Assembly (NCBI GenBank): GCA_030704615.1
Contig: CM060731.1
Span: 64,046,001 to 64,110,000, forward strand
Length of the DNA stretch: 64,000 nucleotides
From: Takakia lepidozioides
Taxonomy: Eukaryota > Plantae > Bryophyta
Reading direction: 5' to 3'
The notes under the pieces were generated by a model. It saw only the letters and a program-made list of their open reading frames with translations, searched no databases and was not told the DNA's origin. The position numbers were made by a program, and so were the translations under genes. How positions within the stretch are numbered: the first letter of the stretch is position 1; the number at the start of each line of letters is the position of its first letter. This document shows positions 21,277 to 64,000 of the stretch, piece after piece.

Positions 21277-22906
21277 TCATAGTGAATAGATCTGTTGCAG
21301 TAGTTGAACATCAACAATGGGTGATTTGAGCTCCGGGAAGATGGAATCTGGATGTCGATAGCGCTCTTCTACCAAATGCCAAAAGATATTGCCAGTCATC
21401 AACTGAAGTATACCTTGGAAGTATGAGCGCACAGCAGATTCGGCGGGTGTTGATTTCCATTTTGATAGTGATTGCTCTCCCAGCTCCATGGTAATTCTTG
21501 CGTAGTTGTTTACAATCTCGATGGCTCTCCACATAGCTTCCCGTAGAGATAGGTTCTCAGTTCGCATCAACACTTTGACTAGATTGCTATCATCATTTGT
21601 CTCGTGCATCTCCTTGGCGTAGGAAAAGATACAATTTATATATCCTATATGCAGGCCGGCGTTGTATATCAAGGATTCCATCAAAGGATGCCTGCGCATG
21701 TAAGCTGGAAGGAATTCACCGTGCCCAAACTCCACAAGCATCAAAGTATATCGGGCAGCAACATTCTTGAAGCGCATTGGTGTGAATGACTCCAATGTCT
21801 GCAAGTGAACTGGATTGCCTTGAGAGTCAAGGTTATGTGAAGCCATGTATAATGATGTGTTAAATTCCTTGTAGGCTCCTGCAAAAGCACTAAACCAATC
21901 TGGAGTGGACATACTTCTCAAATCACGACCTATTTCCCAAACTATCCTCTCAATCGGGATGGGATTGGGTGGGGGCTGTTCTTGTTGAAACAAAACATTC
22001 AAATGGTTTACAGTACCTTGGATAATCTGAGGGTTCTCCAAGATTCTGCGGTCTATGCCATATTCCTCGCAAGGGAAGATGTCTGGAATATCATAAAACA
22101 TGTCATCGGTAATGAAAGCAAGGATGAAGGCTATAGTAGCAAACGCTATTCGGTCAGCATTTGCTGCTCCATTGTAAAAGTACGTTGCAGAATAAAGTGA
22201 CATCTGCATATAGGATTTGAGAGCTGACTTGACCTGCCATTGTCCAACAATTTTCTTTAGCTTTTTCAGTGGTTCATTGACATATACACTTTGCTGAAGT
22301 GGTGGAAGGCCCTCGATGAGCAAGGAAGATATCGCAGGTGTTAGCCCTATCTCATCGCTCATCGGAGTGCACACAGCTGAATGCATGTTGAGTTGTCGTT
22401 TTGTCTTGATACCTGTGCACCACATGAAACCTCATAAGATGATTTGATGCAAATATCGAAGATGAGTGAGGTTGAATTCAACCAAAGCGAGCAAAAAATC
22501 CTTAGGACCACATAAACTTGATATCATGAAAACAATATGTCGTACTACTGAGTTAATCAAGCCACAAGGAAATCTCAAAAGTAGTAGGGAAAATTTGATC
22601 ATACAATGGCTAGCAAGTTAGTATCAAACAAAATATCTCCAAAAGAGAATCCTGGGCAAGTATGACGGCATATATGGTTTTGATATGAAAAATATGCACG
22701 AAATGAGATATAAGGTAACACACACCGTTATTGAATTTTGTGGGAAGCACATCATGAAATGGGCTTTGGATTGGAGGAGCGATGTTGTGGTGGTCCTCCG
22801 TGAAGCCAACATCGGAGCAGCGTGTGAATAGTAGGGGCAACTTGGTTTGGAACTTGATGGAGATTCCAATAGGGTTTAGATAGAGGCTCAGGAGTTGGAA
22901 AGCCAT
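21277..22906 (-). CDS. Microbial terpene synthase-like protein (MTPSL), 2 exons, ~438 aa
   Basis: Exon 22906-22726 joins exon 22412-21277 through a phase-1 GT-AG intron (FNNG|IKTK). Class I motifs DDMFYD, sensor R (PMRFKN), NSE-like INCIFSYAKE and WHLVEERY; alpha-domain only. Start codon uncertain (in-frame ATG also at ~23008). Confidence 0.88.
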
Positions 22907-30825: not shown

Positions 30826-32505
30826 ACCGGGCAAAAGATCAGCATGCCCGAGAAATTTGATGGGACGAGATCAACATTTCGTGGTTTTGTTCAACAAGTA
30901 CGACTGTTTCTACGACTACATCCACAACGCTACCCCAATGAAGGTATTCAAGTGGGATTTGTGGGCACCCTTCTATCAGGCACTCTCTTATCTTGGTTTG
31001 CACCGCTATTATAGAAAAATTTGCATTTACTATACAATTTTGAAGCGTTCATGTCCGAATTCACTGTAACGTTTGGAGAGAATGATAGAGAGAGAGTTGC
31101 AGAGACAAAGATGTGAAATCTTCGACAAGGGGCACGTCCAGCTTCCGTTTATGCTGCCGAATTTCAACAACTTGCGTGCGACCTCGACTGGAATGAGAAG
31201 AGTCTCATTAGTCAGTTCCGATGTGGCCTAAAAGAGGATGTAAGAGATTTATTTTCTGACAATGCCAAAGGTGAGTACACTCAGCGAATTCATCACCCAA
31301 GTCATTGCATGTGATAATCGTTTGTTCGAAAGACGTCAACAGAAGCGATCTGGATGGTCGACAACCCATCATGCCGCTGCTATTACGACACCAAACACAA
31401 CGATCCATCAGACATCCGGTAGTGATCCTATGCAGATTGATGTTGTCCGATTCAAGCCATTGACGCCACAAAAAAAACAAAGACGGCGTTCGAATGGATT
31501 ATGCCTCTATTGCGGAGAAGAAGATCACATAACATTTAACTGCTCCAATAAGAGAAGATTCAAAGCTCGGGGCGCAACTCAAGTGTTCCATAGTATAGAG
31601 GCCACATGTTTCCTCCAGCACCAGCCAACTCTCTTTCTAAGCTGCAAAGAAAGAGACAAGAGTCCAGTCACAATAGGAACCATGCGGATGGACACCACAA
31701 ATTCCTCACCGAAAAGATGTCTTTTTCTACCTCCAGACCCTGCACCTTGCTTCACAGTTCCGGTAAAAATGAGAGTGCAAAATCGAGATATCTCTATAGA
31801 AACACTTTTGGACTCAGGGGCTTCAACATGTTTTATTGACAAAAACTTCGCGAAACAACACAATTTAACGCTCGTAAAGAAGAAATTCTCGGCCCCCGTT
31901 GAAGTCATCGATAGACCAGACGGATCAAGAAATATTGACCATGAAACTCGACCACTTAAAGTGAAGCTTAAATATCAAGCATCACATATTGTTTTCAACG
32001 TCATCCAGTTTTCAACGAATCATGTGATCCTTGGACTTCCCTGGTTCGTACTTCACAATCCTGACATCGACTGGCGATCGCGAAAAATTTCTGCAAGACA
32101 AAAATGTAGAAATATCAAAGGTATTCAATCCCTGTTCCTTGGAGCTAGAGCTTTCATGAGAGCTACAAAAAAAGATGCGACATTTGCACTTTATGCGACT
32201 CTGATCAAGACCACAACATACAAATGTACTTCCACATTATCCACTCAATATCAAGATTTCAATGATGTCTTCGAAAAGAAAAATGCAAACATATTGCCAG
32301 AACATCGACCTTGTGACTATGCAATTGAGTTACAAAAAAGAGCCCAACCACCATTCGGCCCAATCTATAACTTATCCCAGACGGAGTTGGTTGCATTACG
32401 TGAATACATTGATGAAAATTTGTCGAAGAACTTCATTCGACATTCAAAATCACCTGCGGGGGCGCCTATCTTGTTTGTGAAAAAGAAGGACGGATCATTA
32501 TGCAT
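30826..32505 (+). mobile_element. Ty3/gypsy fragment (gag-protease-RT start), same family as 32876-39359
   Basis: PEKFDGTRS..RGFVQQVRL, zinc knuckle CLYCGEEDHITFNC, protease LLDSGAS, RT start [19 protein letters not shown]. Confidence 0.93.
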
Positions 32506-32875
32506 ACTTCGTAATCGTTTCTGAAAGCATACCGTCGGACAACCTCTGTTGCATGTCTTAGGAAATGGGCAGTAGTGTTGCTAACCTGTTTTGTCTAAGT
32601 CATGAACCAGCGGTTAACACATGTAACTATTCCACGACACGTAGTCACGTGGAGAAGGATGCCATTGGCTGGGGGGATTTTTTTGCCGCGATTTCTGTGA
32701 AGTCGTTGCAAAATGCTCCCATAGCCCCTCCTCTGGCTTCCGAGAACATTTCATTTTACAAAATTTCCTTTTAATAACTATTATGGCACTTATTCAAACT
32801 CGTTTCGTGTTAAGGATTTAGGGTCAATTGTAATTTTTCGATCGAGATCGGAGTTCTTTAGTTCTTAGCCATTTC

Positions 32876-35800
32876 TGTCAATGACGAGAACATGACTGAA
32901 CACAAACAAGAAATCAAACTAGAGGTACAAGACTAGACAAGAAGTCAAGGTCAGCGTGGCCGTATGCACGATGAGTAAATAATAACAATAAACAAGAGTA
33001 CAAGATATTAGAACACGACTTGAATACTGGAATGCTGGAAACTAGACTGGAATATCAGATACTGGAAACTGGGCTAGAGTACTGGGAACTGGAAACAAGA
33101 GTAGCTTGAATTGGTGTTGGAGAGACTGAAGAGTGTCCAGTCTCACCTCCTATATATACTGGCTACTAAGAAGCTTCCCCTATGGAGGTTTCTTGGAAGT
33201 TTCTTGGAAGTTTCCAAGATTAAACAAATGTTTCTTCATGGCTAAGCTTCCTTAAACAAATGAGGTATCTTGATGGAGAAATTTCCTCCAAACGAAGCTT
33301 CCTGAGCATTTTCCCAAGTTACTCTTACTAATTTGGTAAACTCCCAGTAACTTGGTAAGTAATGGTAAATCATGGTAAATCATAATAACTTCCGATAACA
33401 TGGTAATTTGGTAACTTCTGGTATTTACCCCTGGTAAGTTCCTCTGGGCTATGTCCGTGACATCACCCCCTTCTCTAGCGCCGAGTTCCTCGAGGAGCGG
33501 TAAAATCCTGGACTTGCTTAGAGTTGGAGAAAATCCAAAATCCGACGAATGGTACTTGCCAAGTATTCGGCTCTTCGTTCTTGACTCAAATGATTTATAG
33601 TTTCCTGCAACCATTGATAGTCTCCAACACCTTGAACTTGGGACCACGCAGTGATTTGAGCATTCTGATTTTCGAAGTTGCTTTCAAACATGATTTCGTT
33701 GCCCTCTGGGTGCGAAGCCTCAACCTCTAACAGCTTGATCAGACTTCGAGTAGGCTCCACTTGCCGTCGTATGGGGTCCAGACAAGGAAGTACGCATCAC
33801 ATTTGTGGCCCATCGTCTCGAGAGCGTCGGCGTGATGTTGAAGGTCGTGAGAGTCGGAACGGCTGATCTGGTAGTTGGGTAAGCGACAGCTCCAATGTAT
33901 CTGGTTCATGTGACTCCATACTGCCAATACAAAATGCAAGAGTGCTGAAAGTGTAGCTATATATACTGATGTGTGATGCTCCTCCCTCCTTGGCATGTAT
34001 CAGATACATTGAATGTGGAGTCTTTACCTGACTCTAATAATGAAACATGAAAGACTGGATGGATGCGCATACTTCGTGGGAGTTCAAGCCGAAAACTGAC
34101 CGAATTTATTTGTCGAATAATTTTGAATGATCCCAGACGTTGATAATCCAACTTCCTTGATGGTCGTGAGGTTTGTATGTCCCGTCGAAGAAGCCACACA
34201 CGATCTCCGACCTTGAACTGGGGATGGAGTTGGCGACGTTGATCTGCGTACTCCTTGTATTGTTTTTGAGCTTCTGCGAGGTGGAATGTAAGCTCCTTGT
34301 GATCGTAGCAAGATGAGCAGCAAGGTTTTCTGCAGCATGGCTTCCAACAGTCTTCATGTGAAAAGGGTTTGCTCGAGGATGATGACTATAATTAGAGAAA
34401 AATGGAGTTTGTTTGGTCAAAGAATGTATAGTGTTGTTGTAGGCAAACTCAGCCAATGACAGAAGGTCCGTCCAATTATCTTGGTGATAATTTATCGTAC
34501 AGCGAAGATAATGCTCCAAAATCTGGTTTACACGTTCGGTTTGACCATCAGTCTATGGATGATTAGCTGTAGAGAGGTTGATCTTAGTATCCAATATGTG
34601 AGATAATCCCCTCCAGAAATTTGATATGAATTGTGGTCATCGATCAGATACGATGTCCTTCGGGAGTCCATGAATGCGGTAGATATTATTGAGGAAGAGT
34701 CTTGCAGTTTCCTCGCCGGTAACCGTCTTATTACATGGAATGAAATGTGTCATCTTCGTAAAACGATCTACAATAACAAGGAATGAATCAGTGGTCTTGG
34801 AAATTGGAAGGTCCGTAATAAAGTCCATAGACACGGACGACCATGGACCCTTGGGAATGGGTAATGGTTGAAGAAGACCGTAAGGTCGATGTCGTGGTCC
34901 CTTCGCTCTAGCACACGTATCGCAAGATTTTATAAATTCTTTCACGAGTTTCCACATCTGCGGCCACAAGTAGTCCCTGGATATCAATTCCATTGTTTTG
35001 TTGAAGCCGAAATGTCCTGCAGCCGGATGATCATGACATGTTTGAAGAATTCGAAGTCGTGTAGATCCTGGAGGTACATAGAGAAGTCCCTTGAAATAAA
35101 GTAAGCCATCTTTGAATTCGAAGTCGTTTGTAACATGTGGGTTGTCTCGAGGTCGATTTAGTTGACTTCGTAGTGTCGTAACAAATTGGTCGTTCTTCAG
35201 TGCTTCCTGAATCTCCTTTCTGATCTCTACATCGTCATAGGTGAACATGGATAGCATATTCACTTGGAGATTTGCTGGTTTCAAGATGATGGATTTCTGT
35301 TAGTCAAAAGATGCATCTCCTTCTTTTGGCGCAAAATACGATTGTCGAGAAATAGCATCTGGTTTTCCTTGAAGATGTCCGGGACGGTAGGTAATAACAA
35401 AATCAAACATTGATAGTGACATATTCCATCTCGCTTGACGTCGATTCAAAACACGAGCACTCATAAAATACTCGAGGTTTTTGTGATCGGTATAGACTGT
35501 GACTTGATGTTTAGCTCCCTCCAATAGATGACGTCACTCCTCAAAAGCATCAATAATTGCTAGAAGTTCTTTGTCAAGGATTTCATACTTGATTTCCGCA
35601 GCGGAAAATTTGCGAGAACAAAAACCAACAAGGTGAAGTTGGGCATCTGTACCATATTGAGAGAGTACCCCGCTGAGTGCAAAGTCCGATGCATGTGCTT
35701 CCAAAAAGAATGGTTTAGATGGGTCTGCATGTACCAGTATTGGAGCCGTTGTAAATGACTGCTTCAGCCTTTCAAATGATTGGTCAGCCTTCTCGTCCCA

Positions 35801-50231: not shown

Positions 50232-53737
<3,506 letters not shown>

Positions 53738-54029
53738 CTTCGATACAATTCCTCTGCAGATCGGGCCCCGTGAAGAGGAATGAGAGAGAGGAAAAAAACA
53801 CTTTAATCGCAGGAGTGTGAAGAGAGAAAAAGAAGAGAAAGGTTTGTTCCACGGTGGCCCGCTTACCGTCGCGCCGCATCTTTCTTCTCGAACGGCCACG
53901 ATTCGCTGTGGGACAGCATCGTGCGGTGAAAGAGCGAGAAGTTCAAAGACGGTGGGCGATACTTCACATGTAAAACGGCAAATTTTCAGGGGAGTTCTCG
54001 AAGTATTTTACTTGTTCCCCATACGTTCC

Positions 54030-54355
54030 ATTGATTTCTTAATGTTCATCCTCTTAATGATTTTTTTGATGAATGTGGTAACACAATCCATTCGACGAGT
54101 CGCCGAATGATAACATATATAATCCATAGGTACCGGTATATTGATTTCTTAATGTTCATCCTCTATAGGATTTTTTTGATGAATGTGGTAAGACATTCGG
54201 CAAAGACCAGTCGCCGAATGATAAAATATATAATCTAGAGGTATATTGATTTTTTAGTGTTCATCCTCTATATGATTTTTTTGATGAATGTGGTAAGACA
54301 ATACATTCGGCGAAGACCAGTCGTTGAATGATAAAATATATAATCCAGAGGTATA
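54030..54355. repeat. Tandem repeat, ~105-110 bp x3
   Basis: TTGATTT(C/T)TTA.TGTTCATCCTCT...TTTTTTGATGAATGTGGTAA...GAATGATAA.ATATATAATC starts at ~54031, 54141 and 54246. Confidence 0.85.
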
Positions 54356-54829
54356 TTTGTGAAACCTCAAAACGAGCCTGAAGCATATACTCTTTTTGTC
54401 GCGCAGGAAGTTGTGAATCTAGCAGAGCCTACGGAGTGCCCAACATCATCCCAGCGTGGTCGGCAGGAGCCGTCGGATGTTTTTATCAATTGAATCTGAG
54501 ATGAAGTCCCTGTCGCTTCTTGGCAATGAGAGTGAAACAATGCGCAAACATCTGCTTGCCGACCTTCGTTGTGTTCGTGGGAGGCTGTCCACTTTACAAA
54601 TCAGAATCGACAAAGGTCTGTTGCACCCTCTTCAGGCAGTTCCATTCATAAAAAATGATGATGGAAACAACATGTCTCTTGCCAAGAAAATGGATTTTGT
54701 AGACCGGTTCCATAGTAAGTGACCATTGAGTCCATTGGCAATGACACTTATTTTGTGATCACCAGGTTTAATATGAAGTACATGTCTGTTCATAGGTTGT
54801 TATTCACTTTGCCATTCCATCCACATTCA

Positions 54830-56145
54830 ACCTATGTAACCCACTCAATGGGACACCCATGGGCCGGGGTGACACAACGCAGGGTTACACCCTTATGGGG
54901 TTTCATAACGTAACATAGCTCTACTTAGTGTAACTCGTATCTGTGGTACTCCACACAGTGTAACACAGACGAGTGTAACCCTCTTCAGTGTAACTCATTG
55001 TGGTGTAACTCCAAGTGTAACTCCAAGTGTAACTGCAATGTAACTCTCCACAGTGTAACCCAGTATGTAACCCCATCGAATATTGCTGTCAGTGGTGTAA
55101 CTCGATGACTACAGTGTGACTACACGGTCTGGGTTAGTCTGCCGGGGTTACATGACCCTTCAATACAGAGTGGGAAGACGCTAGAGTCGAGCACCTTTAG
55201 TCGCCAATACTAGCAACCCCTCTATGTGCAACCCCTCTATGTGTAACCCATATATGTGTAACCCCTCTATATGTAAGCAATTTAGGTGTATCCCACCCTG
55301 TATGTGTAACCCCTCTATGTGTAACCCAATTTGTGTGTAACCCACCCTGTATATGTAACCCATGGACGTGTAATCCATGAGATAGTTAATCATTCCGTTC
55401 AACCTATGTTATGGACCTGTGTAGCCCTCCGGAGTGTAACTTGTTGTTGTGTAACCCCAAGAAGTATGTATCCCGACCACATGTAACCCCCACTGTTGTC
55501 ACCCCATCGCATGTAACCCATTGTACAATTTGGGGTGCATGTTGTAAACCCGATGCTACATCACCCCATCTTATGTATCCCCACGACACGTAGCCCTTGT
55601 ATAGCCAACCCTGCCCACTGTCACTGTGCACAGTGTAACTCAGAGCTGTGTAACCCTCTTGAGTGAGTGTAACCCAGAGTGTTGTAACTCCAAGAAGCAT
55701 GTAGCCCGACCAGATGTTCCCCCATCGTATGTAACCCATTATATATAGCCCTCATGTATGTAACCCCATGTAGTATAACTCTAAGAACTTCAGTGCACAA
55801 AAACTTCAGTGCGAAAAGAAAAAAAAAAAAGAAAAAAAAAACAAGTGCACATAGTCGAGGTGGGGTTACATGCCACGAAACTATACCGTTTCAGCTACGT
55901 GACCCTGACATAGCCAGGAAGGCCCAACCATGTAACCCTGAGAGGCCCATTGCATGTAACCCATAAGTGTATCCCCACGTTGTGAGACCCGGCACGGTGT
56001 AACCCATCACTTATGTGTGAACCCACAGAGTGTAAGCCCATTGCCCCAGGGCCCCAAGGTGTACCCAAGTACTTGTCTATGACTCCACTTCATGTAACCC
56101 AATAAGGTGTAACCCCATGTAAGCCCATTGCATGAAACCCAAACT
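54830..56145. repeat. TGTAACCC motif field (GGGTTACA on the minus strand)
   Basis: Dozens of dispersed (G)TGTAAC(C/T)C motifs. Confidence 0.85.
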
Positions 56146-56200
56146 GTGAAGTGTTACGAACAAACCACATAGAAGCAAAAAATGCATCAAGAGACGCTAT

Positions 56201-58189
56201 TTATTTCTTTGGCCATTTGACCAAGTCTTTGTCCATCTCGTCACACAGCCAACTAATCATATGAGTACGGGAAGCTATCATGGTTGACTCGTCGAACCAA
56301 CTTACAGTAAACGCCCGCCTATGACGGGTTTGATCTTCTGTGGTTTTCACATTGAACTTCCACTCCAAGTAAAATTGCACAAAACAAAGTGCATAATAGC
56401 CGCACTCCCAACAGCTCCGTTGCTGGGGGACACTGGCCTCAAAACCATTCCATCCTCTCCATGACGTAACTGAAGTCATCAAATCCAGGCATGCAATCAA
56501 AGAACGCTATGGCAAAATTTCACAAAATTCCTTCAACGAGTTTGGGTCGGGCAATGGTTTTATGGGAGTCCAAATGTACTATCCGACCTCGGCACTCTAA
56601 AACAGCAACACTCCAGTGATCACTGCAACACAAACAAAGCCGTAACGTCAGAATAGAAAAAAAAACTCTCCAATGAAACCCATTGTGGTGTAACCCGGCT
56701 GTGGTATAACCCAGTAGTGTAACCCACCTCATGTGTAACCCAGTAGTGTAACCCTTTGTACTGTAACTCTAAACGGTGTAACACAACTAGTCAGCGGTGC
56801 AAATCCAAACTAGTGCAACTCAGTGTAGAACAGAGGAGTGTAACCCAACATGATCAGTCAACGCTCAAATATCTTACTCGAAGACAATAGGGATGACAAC
56901 CACGTCCACAAGATCTCGATTCTTTGTGAATACCATCCCTCGGGCATCCTGAGTGTACCATTCTTGCACCAACCCGAATAGCGTCTGCAGATCGTTACCA
57001 TTGGTACGCATGACATGCCACTGGAAATGAGCACAGATGACAGACTCAGGTGCGATAGCCTTAAACAATTTGGCCTCCAGAAGTCTGTTGTAACCCGAGA
57101 GCAATGCATCTGTGACAGTTGCTCTTATTTTATACATCGGCTCAAAATCTGTCTCTTCCAAGTAAAACTGTAACGGGGTAGAAGCCAGGAAGGCATCGCC
57201 ATAATAAACCTTTACTTCGGGCGCCCCATGAGGGTCCGACACCATTCTGAACTTTGTCAAGTACCGTTGTTTTAGTCTGCACAACAAACCGCACATTACG
57301 AACATTACGATGCATCATACAAGAGTTATAAGGATCAAAGTACAATGAGGTACCTCGAACGCTCCCGCAAGTGTTTGGCAAGGACCTCTTGCTGCTGGAC
57401 AACGTCAACCTCGGAGACCCCTGCACTTTTGCCTTTCGATTTGGTTCGCTGTTTTTTGGGTGCGACAAGAACAGATACTTCTTTGTTAGTGCCAGGGGGT
57501 TCAGCCAACCGCTTTCTTTGAGCAGGCGGCCGTTTTGACCTCCTGGGATTCTCTGCAACCTTGACAATGCCGCCCGTAGGGAGAATTTCTGAGCCAGAGA
57601 TGACAATGCCGCCCGTAGGGGGAATTTCTGGGCCAGAGGTGCCTTGTTCTGAGTTTGCTGCAAGTGCTGAAGACTACACCCCCTCATCTGAGACGTGCTG
57701 GGGAGGTGACTGACCAAGGGCAGAAGTGTCAGAGCTCACCTCCTCGGTGCTGCCCCTGTCAGTGTCACCCTTCTGTTCAGACCCCTTATCAGAGTCACGT
57801 TTCTCAGTATCACCCTTCTCTTCGGCTACCTCCTCAGTGTCACCCTTCTCTTCGGCTTTCTCCTCAGTGTCACTCTTCTCAGTGTCACCCTTCTCTTCGG
57901 CTACCTCCTCAGTGTCACGCATTTCAGTGTCACCCTTCTCTTCGGCTACCTTCTCAGTGTCACTGTTCTCAGTGTCACCCTTCTCTTTGGCCGCCTTATC
58001 AGTGTCACCCTGCTGAGTAACAATCTTATGTGTGTCACCCTTGGCAGTGTCACTCTTCTCAGTGTTACGATGCTCCGCAACATCCTTCTCTTCGTGACTC
58101 TCCACAGTGAAACGCTCAATGTGACCCTGCTCAGTGTCACCCTTCCAACTGACAACCAACTCGGTGACACCCTTCCCCATATCACCCAT
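56201..58189 (-). pseudogene. Spliced Ulp1/SENP (C48) SUMO-protease-like gene with acidic KGDTE repeat N-terminus, probably transposon-borne
   Basis: VVIPIVFE|DHWSVAVLE (His), VHLDSH (Asp), PQQRSCWECGYYAL (oxyanion Gln, catalytic Cys). Introns ~57353-57277 and ~56876-56623. In-frame TAG (57674) and TGA (56520) look like C>T changes; also one frameshift. Confidence 0.8.
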
Positions 58190-59027
58190 GTCGATGTCAC
58201 TCTTCTTTGCATCAACCTCCTCAATGCCTCCTCAAAGTGATGGGCGGCGCGACGACGCACTACAACATATCACGGTATTTATGACTGTATATATAACTAT
58301 TCTACAGTCATAAACGGTACATATGACTTCTATGATTGTAAGTCGTGCAAACCAAGTCAATACAATGAGTACAGGATGGTACGGTCCGGATGACTACAGT
58401 CATATGAACCAAGTGATATATCTCACTGCAGTCATATATACCATACTGCAACCGCGCCACGTGGCGAGGCGCAATTGATTTAAAAATTTTAATTTAAAAA
58501 TAAAATAAAAATATATATTAAACGCCGCATCGCATCGCTTGTGCCACCTGGCATAATGCATTTTATAATAATGAAAAAACCACGTGGCAGTCCATCTAGG
58601 GTACCACGTGCTATCCCTAGCTCGCCTACTAACCCTAGGGCCATCTTATCCATTTGATTGTACTTAGAGGAGTTTGAACTTGGTGTTTTAATTGTATTAT
58701 ACACACCAAATTACAAAATCCCCAGTAGTCATCATGACTACGTAACCTCATCCATGTACACTGTAGTCATGGAAATGACTATGAATGGTGAGCTAAATCT
58801 GATCAATTGCCGTTGACCAGCCTTCCGCCCATTCCGGAGCCATGTAGTCATACAGACGACTATTTAGGTAGTCGTTCGTATGACTACAGTCGTATGAACG
58901 ACTGCGGGAGGTCAATTTTATATAAAAACATGGTGCAGTCATGGTCAAAGTCATGAAAACCATGACTACCACGGTTTGGCAATCATAACTACCGCGATCT
59001 GTTGTAGTGACGGCTTGCCTTGCAAAA

Positions 59028-60358
59028 CTATATAGCTCCGTTGATCTTAACTGACTTGTCACCCCACTCTTCTGTACTCAAACTCGATTTTAAATCCTCG
59101 AGCTCAGAATCCAAGGTCGCAATTCCGTCACCAAGTTGTGCAAAGTACATCAGACTAAAGCCGTAATACTCATCGACCAGGTCCTTCACCTTTGAGGCCG
59201 TAAGAGCACTTTCCAGAAGGTCAGTCATGAACCCCAACCTGGGATGCGTTTGGGAAACTGACCTACCATGATTTCTTACATCGTTGTGGGCCAGAATTCT
59301 CAAAAAGAGTGGTGGCAGTCCAATGTGTGGTTTGGTGAGATTCTCCATTTGATTGATCAATCCTTCCGCAAAACCGCGAGTGAATTCCAACGGATCTGAA
59401 ACAACCAAACCTTCGATTCCATCTACAGTAATAGTGATGACAAGAGGATTTGAAATTCTGGCATCGTCAAGGTCGGTATTGCCAACAGCTGGTTTGTCCA
59501 TCGTGTCATCATCATGCGAGGCTTGGCTCTCTCGATGGACTCGTGTAAGTCTCTCACCTTTTTTCTTTTTCTGCTTTGGCATGTCAGGATGCCCAATGCT
59601 CTCCAAATACTCCTTCACCCGATTCAATTCCTCTATCATTAACGGACCATGATCCGTCTGGGTTGTAAACGCCTTGTGGGCAGCAACAACACTATCCATA
59701 TCATCACTTCTAAGATGATGTCGAGCTCCCTGCGCAATACAGCGTGAGGGGTTACACCAGAGAAAAGGGTTATAACACGAGGGGTTACACATGAAAAATG
59801 GGTTACAAGGAAGGTGGGCTACACGGGGTTACACACCATAGGGATTTTTAACAGGGGTCCTCTGTAGGTGGGTTACACTTTGGGTTACACGCCACAGGAG
59901 AGACAGGGGGGGTAACACAAAGGGTTACACGGATAGACAACAGCCCGAAATTTGAAAAACAGAAAAATGGCAGGGAATCCAACTTGATTGTCCGTCGATA
60001 GAACCCAACTTGATTTTGCAGCTGTCACATGGACATTTTCAACAGCCATGGCATGCTTGAGCTCCGCATCAGGAAACAGTTTTGTTCCTTTCGGTCAGGC
60101 CATACATGCGGCCGTTCCATCGACAATATGCCGATTCAGTCTGCTCTTATCTACCTTTACTTCCCCACAGTAAGGACATTTGAACTTAGGCCAGCCCTTT
60201 GCTCCCTCCACCTTGGCCTCTCTACACCTGGTGTGGCAATACGCGATCATTGTAGCATGCTCATGCTCAGTGTACCAGAAGCGAACTCGTTCACCATCCC
60301 TCTTTAAGTGATCAAATGGAATAGTAGCCTCTCCAGGGAACAGATAACAATCAGCCAT
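59028..60358 (-). pseudogene. Two-exon gene of unknown function with a zinc-finger-like motif
   Basis: Exon 1 from ATG 60358 has FKCPYCGEVKVDKSRLNRHIVDGTAAC and one TGA at 60095. The intron ~59982-59730 is rich in GGGTTACA. Exon 2 is open for ~230 aa with a basic PKQKKKK patch. Confidence 0.6.
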
Positions 60359-61664
60359 GGCAAAAGAAAAAGCTGACAGAAGAGAAGAGAAGAGCAAGAG
60401 CAAGACAAGACAAGACAAGACCAAGAGAATTCTGAAGAACGCACAGCAGGGAGCACGCACAGCAAGGAGTGCAGGAAGAATAGGAAAGGGCTGCGAGAAG
60501 GGAAAAACTGAACAATGATCAAAGAACGAAGAACGCAGCTAGCTAGATGTCACCCGTAAGGCACGTCGGTTAAGCGAAAGACGGCGGTTCATTAAAATAT
60601 GGCGGCTTGCAATCAATTATATCCGCACTGACTCACACGTGTATGAGTTACAATCCCGATGTCACCCGGAATAGCGGAGTGTAACCCGTAACCCTACACT
60701 TGTGAGCGTGACAAACCGGCCGTTACCCGCATGCGAGACACGTCGAGTGTTACCCTCCGTCATGTACCCACATATGATGTAACCCTTCGTCACAATCTCA
60801 TGTACCCCTAGTGTATGTGACTCCCAAACACAACATCGATGTAAACCTGTCATATCAAACCATTAGTATGCAACCTCCAGGTAAACATGGTCGATGTAAC
60901 GCCCCACCCATGTAACCCTAGCCTATGTGGCTCCGCGAGCGCAACATCCATGTAACCCATCAAACATGTCAACCCCATCTAAACCTCCATTACTAAACCG
61001 TCTACCAAGCCACCATGTATTGAGAAAGAAAATACCGTGTAACCCCCTGTGTGTAACCATAGCACACGTGACGCAGTCATATAAACCATTAAACATGTAA
61101 CCGGTTGACAGTGCTTGCAGAACACGCATGATTCGATACATATTGCATCCAGAATAGCGATGAGTAGGCTGCCCCGGCTGGTGTGTGAACAAAAGATACA
61201 CGAGAGGAGAGTGAATGGGCATCCCGTCAAATGAGCGGCTGCTTGCATGGCTAGACCGAAAGAAACAAAACCCTTTCCTAATGTGGATCTCAGGAATACC
61301 ATAGCCAACGGGGACGGTGACAAAACAACAAGAATGACATTGAGAAAGAAAAAGGATAGAGACAACCGTATCAATCGTAGAGAAAACCGTAGTAATAGAT
61401 TTGCCGGATCGCTGCACGGAAAGTGTTGTCTTGCATGTTGTTGGGAGGACGATACTGAATTCAATGAACTACAAATATTTCGCATTGATGTGTGAAGCCG
61501 ATTGGGCGCCACGGGAATTGCAGAAAGCTGATGCCCCAAAGCAAAAAAACGAGTGAGCTAGGAATCTGAAAAACGGATGGAGAGAGCAAATTAGGGTTTC
61601 GGCCTCCATTCAACCTCCATTCGGCCGTCGGATAGTTTACACGTGTATGATGTACACGAGGCGG

Positions 61665-63402
61665 AGTTACAAAGGGTTACATGGGTTACAAAGGGTCACA
61701 GAGGGTTACATGGAGTGAGGTTACATAGGGGTGAGGGTGACACTCTACGGTGCTACAGACGGTTACATGGGTTACAGAGGGTTACATGGTGGTGAGGGTT
61801 ACAGAGGGTCACAGAGGGTTACATGGAGTGAGGGTTAGATAGGGATGAGGGTGACACTCTGCGGTGTTACAGAGGGTTACATGGGTTACAGAGGGTCACA
61901 TAGGGTTACATGGGGGTGAGGGTGACACTCTGCGGTGTTACAGAGGGTTACATGGTGGTGAGGGTTACACCTGGTGAGGGTTATAGAGGGTCACAGGGTT
62001 ACATGGGGGTGAAGGTGACACTCTGTAGTGTTACAGAGGGTTACATGGGTTACAGAGGGTTACATGGTGGTAAGGGTTACATGGATTACAAAGGGTCACA
62101 GAGGAATACATGGAGTGAGGGTTACATGGGAGTGAGGGAGACACTCTGCAGTGTTACAGAGGGTTACAAGGTGGTGAGGGTTACATGGGTTACAGAGGGT
62201 TACATGGTGGTGAGGGTTACACCTGGTAAGGGTCACAGAGGGTTACATGGGTTACAGAGGGTCACATAGGGTTACATAGGGTTACATGGATTACAGAGGG
62301 TTACATGGGTTACAGAGGGTTACATGGGTTACAAAGGGTTACATGGAGTGAGGGTTACATAGGGGTGAGAGTGACACTCTGCGGTGTTATAGAGGGTTAT
62401 GGGTTACATAGGGTTACATGGTGGTGAGGGTTACACCTGGTGAGGGTTATAGAGGGTCACAGAGGGTCACAGAGGGTTACATGGGTTACAAAGGGTTACA
62501 GAAGGTTACATGGAGTGAGGGTTACATAGGGGTGGGGGTGACACTCTGCGGTGTTACAAAGGGTTACATGGGTTGCAAAGTGTTATAGAGGGTTACACGG
62601 AGTGAGGGTTACATAGGGGTGGGGGTGACACTCTGCGGTGTTACAGAGGGTTACATGGGTTACAGAGGGTTAGATGGTGGTGAGGGTTACACAGGGTCAC
62701 ACAGGGTTACATGGGTTACAAAGGGTTACATGGAGTGAGGGTTACATAGGGGTGAGGGTGACACACAGCGGTGTTACAGAGGGATACACGGGTGTTACAG
62801 AGGGATACACGGGTGTTACATGGGTTGCAGAGGGTTACAGAGGGTCACAGAGGGTTACATGGAGTGAGGGTTACATAGGGGTGAGGGTGACACTCAGCGG
62901 TGTTATAGAGGGATACACGGGTTATAGAGGGTTACATGGTGGTGAGGGTTACACCTGGTGAGGATTACAGAGGGTCACAGAGGGTTAGATGGAGTGAGGA
63001 TTACATGGGGGTGAGGGTGACACTCTGCGGTGTTACATAGGGTTACATGGGTTACAGAGGGTCACAGACGGTTACATGGGTTACAAAGGGTTACAGAGGG
63101 TTACATGGAGTGAGGGTTACATAGGGGTGATGGTGACACTCAACGGTGTTACAGAGGGTTACATGGTGGTGAGGGTTACACTTGGTGGGGTTACAGAGGG
63201 TCACATAGGGTTATATGGAATTAGGGTTACATGGGGGTGAGGGTGACACTCTGCGGTGTTACAGAGGGTTACATGAGGGTTACACCTGGTGAGGGTTACA
63301 GAGGGTCATGGGGTTACATGGGTTGCAGAGGGTTGCAGAGGGTTACATGGTGGTGTAGGTTACACTCGGCGGAGTTACAGAGGGTTACATGGGGGTGAGG
63401 GT
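61665..63402 (+). repeat. Degenerate G-rich satellite of GGGTTACA / GAGGGTTACAT / GGGTGACAC blocks
   Basis: About 1.7 kb built almost entirely from these blocks, with irregular higher-order units and strong strand asymmetry. Confidence 0.95.
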
Positions 63403-64000
63403 TAAACTGACGGACTGGTGTCGCAAAACGACGACGCAGGCGGCGACGACGCGCCGGGGGCGACGACGCCGATGGGATGAGAGCGGGTGTGGGGAGGGAT
63501 TGACTGAGCCCAACCGGCTGCCTTTCGATGGCTGCCGGAGGCGGAGAACCGGCGGTACGGGGTGTCAGGGCTGGACCGTCCTGACGCGCTCGTATTAAGT
63601 TCTTACATTATTCCTATTATCTTCCATATTCAACAATGCTTGCAATATTTGCAAAATAACCTAGGGATAACCTAGCTACATAACACAAGTTTGCGAGCTC
63701 CAAAAAAGTAATAATTGTTGACGAGCACAATCTACTTTCGACCCAACGGCTGCCACAAATGATGGGCCTTGGCCAAAGCTTGAATAGGCATCAGTAGGCC
63801 TAGCAGGGTGGTGCCAATCAATTACCTCCCAGGTCTCGAGTGAGGTGGCCTAATGGGTTGGCCAGGTAATTATCCGTCACCCTTCGATTATTATTATTAT
63901 TATTCCAGAACAGGTGGGTAAGCAAAAATGTCGGTAGTTAAATGATTATACAATTACACCATGATGTCCAGGTATATGATATATCCGCACAACACTAAAC

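Follow-up and report, generated by a model that had tools for sequence, protein, structure and literature searches.

What leads a transposon to fill its own non-coding DNA with one short word and leave its exons nearly bare? The question is raised by a locus of the bryophyte Takakia lepidozioides, which we analyzed within a 64,000-nt stretch of contig CM060731.1 (assembly GCA_030704615.1, positions 64,046,001 to 64,110,000 of the forward strand). We refer to this whole 64-kb stretch as the window and number positions from its first letter. Between about 54830 and 63597 lies a decayed copy of a multi-copy DNA transposon in a non-seed plant, in which a gene for a Ulp1-type protease and a gene for a zinc-finger protein are embedded in arrays of the 8-bp word GGGTTACA/TGTAACCC. 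These arrays may be landing pads for a protein made by the element itself, a possibility that we weigh below against other explanations.

The word is nearly confined to the non-coding DNA of the element. We counted 114 exact occurrences on both strands of the window, the first at 54835 and the last at 63389, compared with a mean of 1.9 and a maximum of 6 for GGGTTACA in dinucleotide-preserving shuffles of the window. An exact count on both strands found none in the remaining 54 kb. The 2.8 kb of exons hold a single word (position 57089, in Ulp1 exon N) versus 40 expected if words were evenly spread (binomial P = 2e-20), and the word is absent from a nested miniature inverted-repeat transposable element (MITE), from the Ty3 pieces, and from the host genes of the window (pentatricopeptide repeat [PPR], terpene synthase, and malate dehydrogenase [MDH]). 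The original prediction, an earlier annotation made from the letters of this DNA, had the word saturating five compartments (54830–56145, both introns, 60660–61100, and 61665–63402), largely avoiding exons, and going unnoticed elsewhere in the window. All three statements hold, with 25, 5, 7, 5, and 71 words in the five compartments, respectively. The arrays and the two genes are laid out as follows.

54830–56145, minus strand: left word array; 25 exact words, 22 minus and three plus, irregularly spaced.
56201–56622, minus strand: Ulp1 exon C, coding for the catalytic half of the protease domain, with the His at 56616–56618, the Asp of LDS, and the Gln and Cys of the QQRSCWECG stretch.
56623–56877, minus strand: Ulp1 intron with GT-AG borders; five words, all minus.
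56878–57270, minus strand: Ulp1 exon N, coding for the N-terminal half of the protease domain.
57354–58189, minus strand: Ulp1 exon A; its product has acidic tandem peptide repeats of the KGDTE type and then a basic stretch.
59028–59729, minus strand: zinc-finger exon 2, a 238-aa open frame; AG acceptor at 59730–59731.
59730–59983, minus strand: zinc-finger intron, GT-AG, phase 0; seven words, all plus.
59984–60358, minus strand: zinc-finger exon 1; a single C2H2-like finger is encoded at 60095–60187.
60660–61100, minus strand: short word array upstream of the zinc-finger gene; five exact and seven one-mismatch words, all minus.
61661–63402, plus strand: right word array; 71 exact and 60 one-mismatch words, all plus, in higher-order tandem repeats.

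Within the left array, word-to-word spacing ranges from 12 to 137 bp, and the 25 exact words have 12-bp flanks that are 33% alike, versus 25% at random positions. Words cover 60% of the bases of the right array, which has periods of 9–10, 17, 42, and about 110–226 bp (commonest spacings 9, 10, 17, and 42 bp) and word flanks that are 46% alike. The GC skew of the right array is 0.40, and nine of the window's 10 canonical G-quadruplex motifs fall within it, each on the plus strand; no such motif occurs in the left array or in either intron. Polarity of the word is minus over 54835–57096 and plus over 61674–63389, and the left and right arrays have no mirror-image relation beyond the word itself. 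A one-letter variant, GGGTGACA, was found 22 times, every time within the element and with a polarity matching that of the word; eight of the 22 lie in minus orientation in the coding repeats of protease exon A (57763–58142).

That the locus is a mobile element was borne out by a sister copy, L001, a 2414-bp contig in an independent assembly (the Logan assembly of run SRR15431198). It is 90%–97% identical to window positions 57835–55312, and exact-product look-ups for further copies returned L001 only. The same left array adjoins the 3′ end of Ulp1 in L001, and we consider this array probably internal to the element, not terminal. Word columns (those with a word in either copy) differ between the two copies at two of 145 positions (1.4%), compared with 41 of 781 (5.2%) for the remaining columns of non-coding DNA in this array and intron (Fisher one-sided P = 0.024, two-sided 0.05); divergence in exons is 2.3%–2.6%. 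L001 is also 45 and 9 bp shorter at two places in the Ulp1 intron, differences that amount to the gain or loss of whole words. We take these comparisons as modest evidence that the word itself is maintained in the element.

What do the two genes encode? Introns had been proposed for both, and in both genes they have GT-AG borders and matching phases. The protease gene runs on the minus strand in three exons, A, N, and C. Membership in the Ulp1 family was tested on a single exon of the sister copy, the exon C equivalent (L001:1123–1551), which is an unbroken frame of 143 aa. This exon scored 22.9 bits against Pfam Peptidase_C48, whose gathering cut-off is 20.7, over profile positions 94–190 of 217. 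Its best matches in the PDB were 6dg4, a Ulp1-like SUMO (small ubiquitin-like modifier) protease, and 1xt9 (SENP8), and its catalytic His, Asp, Gln, and Cys (DHW, LDS, PQQ, WECG) align in order with both structures. The score of the intact exon above the Pfam cut-off, together with the aligned catalytic residues, supports the Ulp1 call of the original prediction, and we classify the protein as a member of Peptidase C48 (Ulp1/SENP) with predicted protease activity.

The window's own protease pieces found no match in Pfam or PDB searches because the domain is split there by the intron, a stop, and a frameshift. All catalytic codons are present in this copy, but they are out of frame behind a TGA at 56520–56522, which stands in place of a CGA in L001. 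Relative to L001, exon C also has an extra T in the run 56441–56444, which shifts the frame, and exon A has a TAG at 57674–57676 where L001 has CAG, for a total of two premature stops and one frameshift in the gene. An in-frame tandem duplication of 39 bp (13 residues; 57562–57638) in exon A is not found in L001 and keeps the frame. Exon N had one relative in a phmmer search of 1.84 billion representatives, a 96% identical open reading frame (ORF), P0001, whose contig is L001. Exon N alone had no Pfam match; its fit to C48 lies in the pattern ...VVIPIV / DHWS, read across the intron. The intact C48 exon had zero matches in a word-indexed protein search.

The zinc-finger gene, also on the minus strand, has two exons separated by a phase 0 GT-AG intron. 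Its CPYC..H finger resembles DNA-binding C2H2 fingers, as had been proposed: phmmer aligned it with individual DNA-binding fingers, from CTCF, TFIIIA, and ZFP57, at E values between 7e-4 and 3e-3 (at most 2e-3 for CTCF and TFIIIA), Pfam similarity to C2H2 fingers fell below the cut-offs, and an Atlas search of the finger piece returned generic C2H2 clusters only. Apart from this weak C2H2 signal, neither exon gave a match to PMD or another family in Pfam searches with E values up to 1. Exon 1 had zero matches in the word-indexed protein search, and the 238 aa of exon 2 had no relatives in Pfam, PDB, Atlas, or the protein search. Single-sequence AlphaFold2 models made without an alignment had a predicted local distance difference test score of 44 and 40 for the two zinc-finger pieces (40 for exon 2), too poor for use. 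Exon 1 is cut by a TGA at 60095–60097. An old, degenerate inverted duplicate of part of this exon is found at

61192–61305, plus strand: 75% identical to 60045–60158,

and keeps CGA at the site of the stop; the exon 1 stop is therefore probably a C-to-T change at a CpG. Considered together with the minus-oriented array at 60660–61100, the duplicate points to an old, local rearrangement of the DNA upstream of the zinc-finger gene.

The window copy is dead and one-ended. Of the two-gene system originally described here, the protease and zinc-finger genes are both present, and both are pseudogenes in this copy. With both genes broken, the window copy can only be a passive target of any protein that reads its arrays.

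What, then, might the arrays be for? The interpretation we lean toward, tentatively and at somewhat less than an even chance, is that the element encodes a DNA-binding protein that docks on the arrays and recruits the protease, functionally like VANC/KIU. For this sequence-specific protein of the family, the arrays would be multivalent landing pads; once bound, it would concentrate the Ulp1 protease on the element's own chromatin, and the protease would there counter SUMO-dependent silencing, keeping the element's genes expressed. Functional counterparts would be the anti-silencing factor VANC/KIU in the VANDAL elements of Arabidopsis, which are Mutator-like elements of the non-TIR kind, and TnpA in Spm elements. 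The zinc-finger protein, as a putative helper, is the most likely candidate reader of the word. Beyond the existence of the arrays and the identities of the genes, every step of this scheme is one that we infer.

Several lines of evidence support the landing-pad interpretation. All 114 words lie within the element, with one in exons versus 40 expected and none in the MITE or Ty3 sequences. The 8-mer of the left array is exact at 25 places amid near-random flanks, and words are less diverged than the spacers around them. Whole words have been gained or lost between copies, the intact copy encodes a C48 protease, and the second gene encodes a C2H2-like finger. In addition, GGGTGACA builds the tandem peptide repeats of the protease, paralleling the repeats of VANC.

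Comparison with known systems places this interpretation in context. VANC21 binds a 9-bp word that forms single-orientation arrays in the introns and spacers of its own VANDAL family; its specificity comes from high word density, not from a single word, and the arrays evolve as tandem repeats (PMC5735166). VANC proteins also carry tandem peptide repeats (PMC5735166). The element described here shares with VANDAL/VANC systems, including KIU, a family-private short word of 8–9 bp (PMC5735166, PMC10398659, PMC13317346), which we found in the window in dense single-orientation arrays that occupy introns and intergenic DNA and spare exons. It also shares arrays that expand and contract as tandem repeats between copies, tandem peptide repeats in an accessory protein, and a Ulp1 domain tied to an accessory gene. 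Unlike in VANDALs, word polarity here flips between blocks, and the element is known from sequence alone. Unlike VANC, the candidate reader is a single C2H2-like finger with a 238-aa tail, in a non-seed plant host. VANC itself, restricted to dicots, has a MAIN/PMD-like fold (PMC13547354) and is not a zinc finger, which places the candidate reader outside the VANC family. The VANDAL-like analogy of the original prediction thus stands for the single-orientation arrays and the turnover of whole words, as described for VANC targets (PMC5735166), and fails for the binder, which is not VANC-like (PMC13547354). Any likeness to VANC would be at most functional and convergent, not by descent. The same prediction had named the Ulp1-domain gene of Arabidopsis VANDALs as VANB. 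We found no source for that link; in KIU-type VANDALs, according to a review, it is the VANC gene that carries the Ulp1 domain (PMC13317346).

If the arrays are landing pads, the element would also resemble En/Spm (CACTA) elements, in that an element-encoded protein, there TnpA, recognizes a short word present in clusters. Through such clusters, both TnpA of Spm and a Mutator transposase cause sequence-specific hypomethylation; for TnpA, clusters rather than single words give specificity, and binding leads to hypomethylation (bioRxiv 10.64898/2026.08.24.746577). TnpA sites are located within the subterminal few hundred base pairs, whereas here kilobases of arrays are present and introns are filled, and the element, unlike Spm, has no TnpA-like gene and no CACTA ends (the unrelated nested MITE excepted). 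A third comparison is with Ulp1-carrying Mutator-like elements (MULEs), namely the Kaonashi/KI-MULEs and those of melon, rice, and grapevine, DNA transposons that likewise have C48/Ulp1 as an accessory gene (PMC13317346, PMC2528002). Ulp1 captures by seed-plant MULEs have been dated near the monocot–eudicot split (PMC13317346). The element differs from these in its moss-type genome, its very divergent C48, an exon N without detectable relatives beyond the 96% identical ORF, and the linkage of its C48 gene to a zinc-finger gene and word arrays.

Other observations count against the landing-pad interpretation. The finger is a CPYC-x12-H with no second His, the next possible ligand being a Cys at +8; its Pfam zf-C2H2_4 match is weak (19.6 bits versus a cut-off of 27), and its zf-Di19 match is likewise under the cut-off. 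A single C2H2 finger normally reads 3–4 bp, not 8. The right array is clearly a product of tandem duplication, and the conservation test relies on one sister copy and is borderline (two-sided P = 0.05). Stops in both genes are C-to-T changes (CAG to TAG once, CGA to TGA twice, one of the latter, in the zinc-finger gene, being deduced solely from the old duplicate), and the two at CpG sites would fit deamination of methylated cytosine. Since C-to-T changes broke both genes, the window copy did not escape decay. Finally, the family's transposase, which is not in the window, is an equally good candidate for the reader.

The main rival, itself rather unlikely, is that the family's own transposase binds the word and that the arrays are over-grown subterminal repeats for transpososome assembly or transposase-driven self-activation; the zinc-finger and Ulp1 genes would then be passengers or would have functions unconnected with the word. 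The reversal of word polarity between the element's two sides (minus over 54835–57096 and plus over 61674–63389) favors such a role. The subterminal transposase sites of Spm and Ac also have opposite polarity on the two sides. In addition, a Mutator transposase alone hypomethylated the termini of its own family in a sequence-specific manner (bioRxiv 10.64898/2026.08.24.746577), and MULEs have repeatedly captured Ulp1 domains without a known role (PMC13317346, PMC2528002). Terminal synapsis, however, needs neither words in introns deep inside the element nor four orientation flips, and both are present; the left and right arrays are not mirror images beyond the word, and the window holds no transposase.

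Could the arrays instead have no protein reader at all? They might be neutral minisatellites, made of a slippage-prone unit spread by unequal exchange and gene conversion. The right array, with its higher-order tandem repeats at 9–10, 17, 42, and about 110–226 bp and flanks 46% alike, is what such a process would produce, and more than 120 unrelated contigs from metagenomes carry plain tandem repeats of (GGGTTACAY)n, which indicates that the word expands easily. We nevertheless consider this explanation improbable, given that one word recurs across five separate compartments, that the left array is irregularly spaced with unrelated flanks, that word divergence between copies is 1.4% versus 5.2% for spacers, and that exons (one word versus 40 expected), other transposons, and host DNA in the window are essentially without words. 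Least probable, and in our estimation very improbable, is that the word recruits a host factor of the Myb/TRB type to a telomere-box-like site or forms G-quadruplexes on its G-rich strand, shaping chromatin in either case. AGGGTT is common to the word and the plant telomere unit, and the right array combines nine of the 10 G-quadruplex motifs on its plus strand with a GC skew of 0.40. The base that follows CCCT in the word logo, however, is mostly not the A of a telomere box, and the left array and both introns are without G-quadruplex motifs. We rejected the telomere-box reading because of this wrong flanking base, and we rejected G-quadruplexes as a general explanation because the motifs are in the right array only.

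The metagenomic contigs mentioned above came from a scan for three adjacent words. It returned more than 120 contigs (L002–L121) of varied GC content with plain 9-bp GGGTTACAY repeats, some of which clearly code three-residue repeats. These contigs showed no similarity to the element or its genes.

We also examined the class, the ends, and the surroundings of the element, for which the following features are relevant.

54030–54357: 110-bp tandem repeat, three copies with 83% matches, in the interval from the malate dehydrogenase 5′ end to the element.
58258–59009, no strand assigned: nested CACTA-type MITE of 752 bp, with 30-nt terminal inverted repeats that start from CACTACAACA and a target duplication ACG.
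63403–63597, no strand assigned: segment of 195 bp after the right array, GC-rich (67%) and CpG-rich; candidate outer terminal region.

No ORF for a MuDR-type DDE transposase (often accompanied by SWIM) was found in the 64-kb window, whose large ORFs encode a terpene synthase, Ty3 protease and integrase, a PPR protein, and MDH. AT-rich unique DNA adjoins the right side of the 63403–63597 segment, and the segment has no inverted partner in the window, by blastn or by local alignment (score 24; shuffles reach 25). Neither a pair of terminal inverted repeats nor a left terminal repeat was found in the window. The locus fails as a MULE on window evidence because the window has no transposase and no terminal repeats. 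The original prediction had likewise reported no transposase or termini and left the class open, and our ORF survey, blastn, and local alignment agree on window evidence. Its coordinates for the element, 54030–63600, need trimming: words do occupy 54835–63389, but the tandem repeat at 54030–54357 contains zero GGGTTACA and is probably outside the element. The 470 bp between this repeat and the first word (54360–54829) may belong to the host or may be the tail end of a convergent transposase gene that has been lost; they contain an 88-aa plus-strand ORF (54456–54722) with no Pfam match. The CpG observed/expected ratio of the element (0.59) is near that of the rest of the window (0.54) and is therefore uninformative on methylation history.

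The nested MITE has CACTA termini and the 3-bp ACG duplication on both sides, as expected of CACTA elements; it is a later insertion, outside the word-bearing family. It has its own subterminal word, CTACAGTCATA, in both orientations and is thus a second, unrelated transposon with a private short word. Once the MITE is removed, only 83 bp separate the zinc-finger stop from the protease ATG, too little for a separate promoter, so the two genes probably form one transcription unit; their reading frames are offset by one.

Among the neighbors, a mitochondrial-type malate dehydrogenase gene (about 51700–53900, minus strand) starts ∼0.9 kb from the first word, which places the element upstream of this gene. 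A single-exon ORF of 382 aa (21277–22425, minus strand) matches the microbial-type terpene synthases (Terpene_syn_C_2, E = 8e-26), which non-seed plants typically have, in keeping with the host. Ty3/Gypsy-type protease (31262–32524, plus strand) and integrase (34637–35284, minus strand) sequences, from one rearranged long terminal repeat retrotransposon or two, contain no GGGTTACA. Rfam reported no RNA family over 53000–64000.

To our knowledge, sequence-specific anti-silencing by transposons is known experimentally from Arabidopsis only (VANC, TnpA, and one Mutator transposase), and our literature search turned up no report of an element of this kind from a bryophyte. The window copy contributes anatomy, not function: gene models with splice sites, the kinds of decay, array turnover, and low divergence of the word. 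The fullest claim that could be built on it strikes us as doubtful, namely that a bryophyte transposon family independently evolved self-targeting, in which a candidate zinc-finger protein would read a private 8-bp word, spread by the element over its introns, spacers, and arms, deliver a SUMO protease to the element's chromatin, and undo silencing by the host. With small proteins and a simple, dense word, the idea is directly testable. If true, the element would be a convergent counterpart of VANC/KIU assembled from other protein parts, and it would give a direct handle on the repeated capture of Ulp1 proteases by DNA transposons. Such systems would then be ancient and recurrent in land plants, and coating with a private word would be a recurrent transposon strategy across them.

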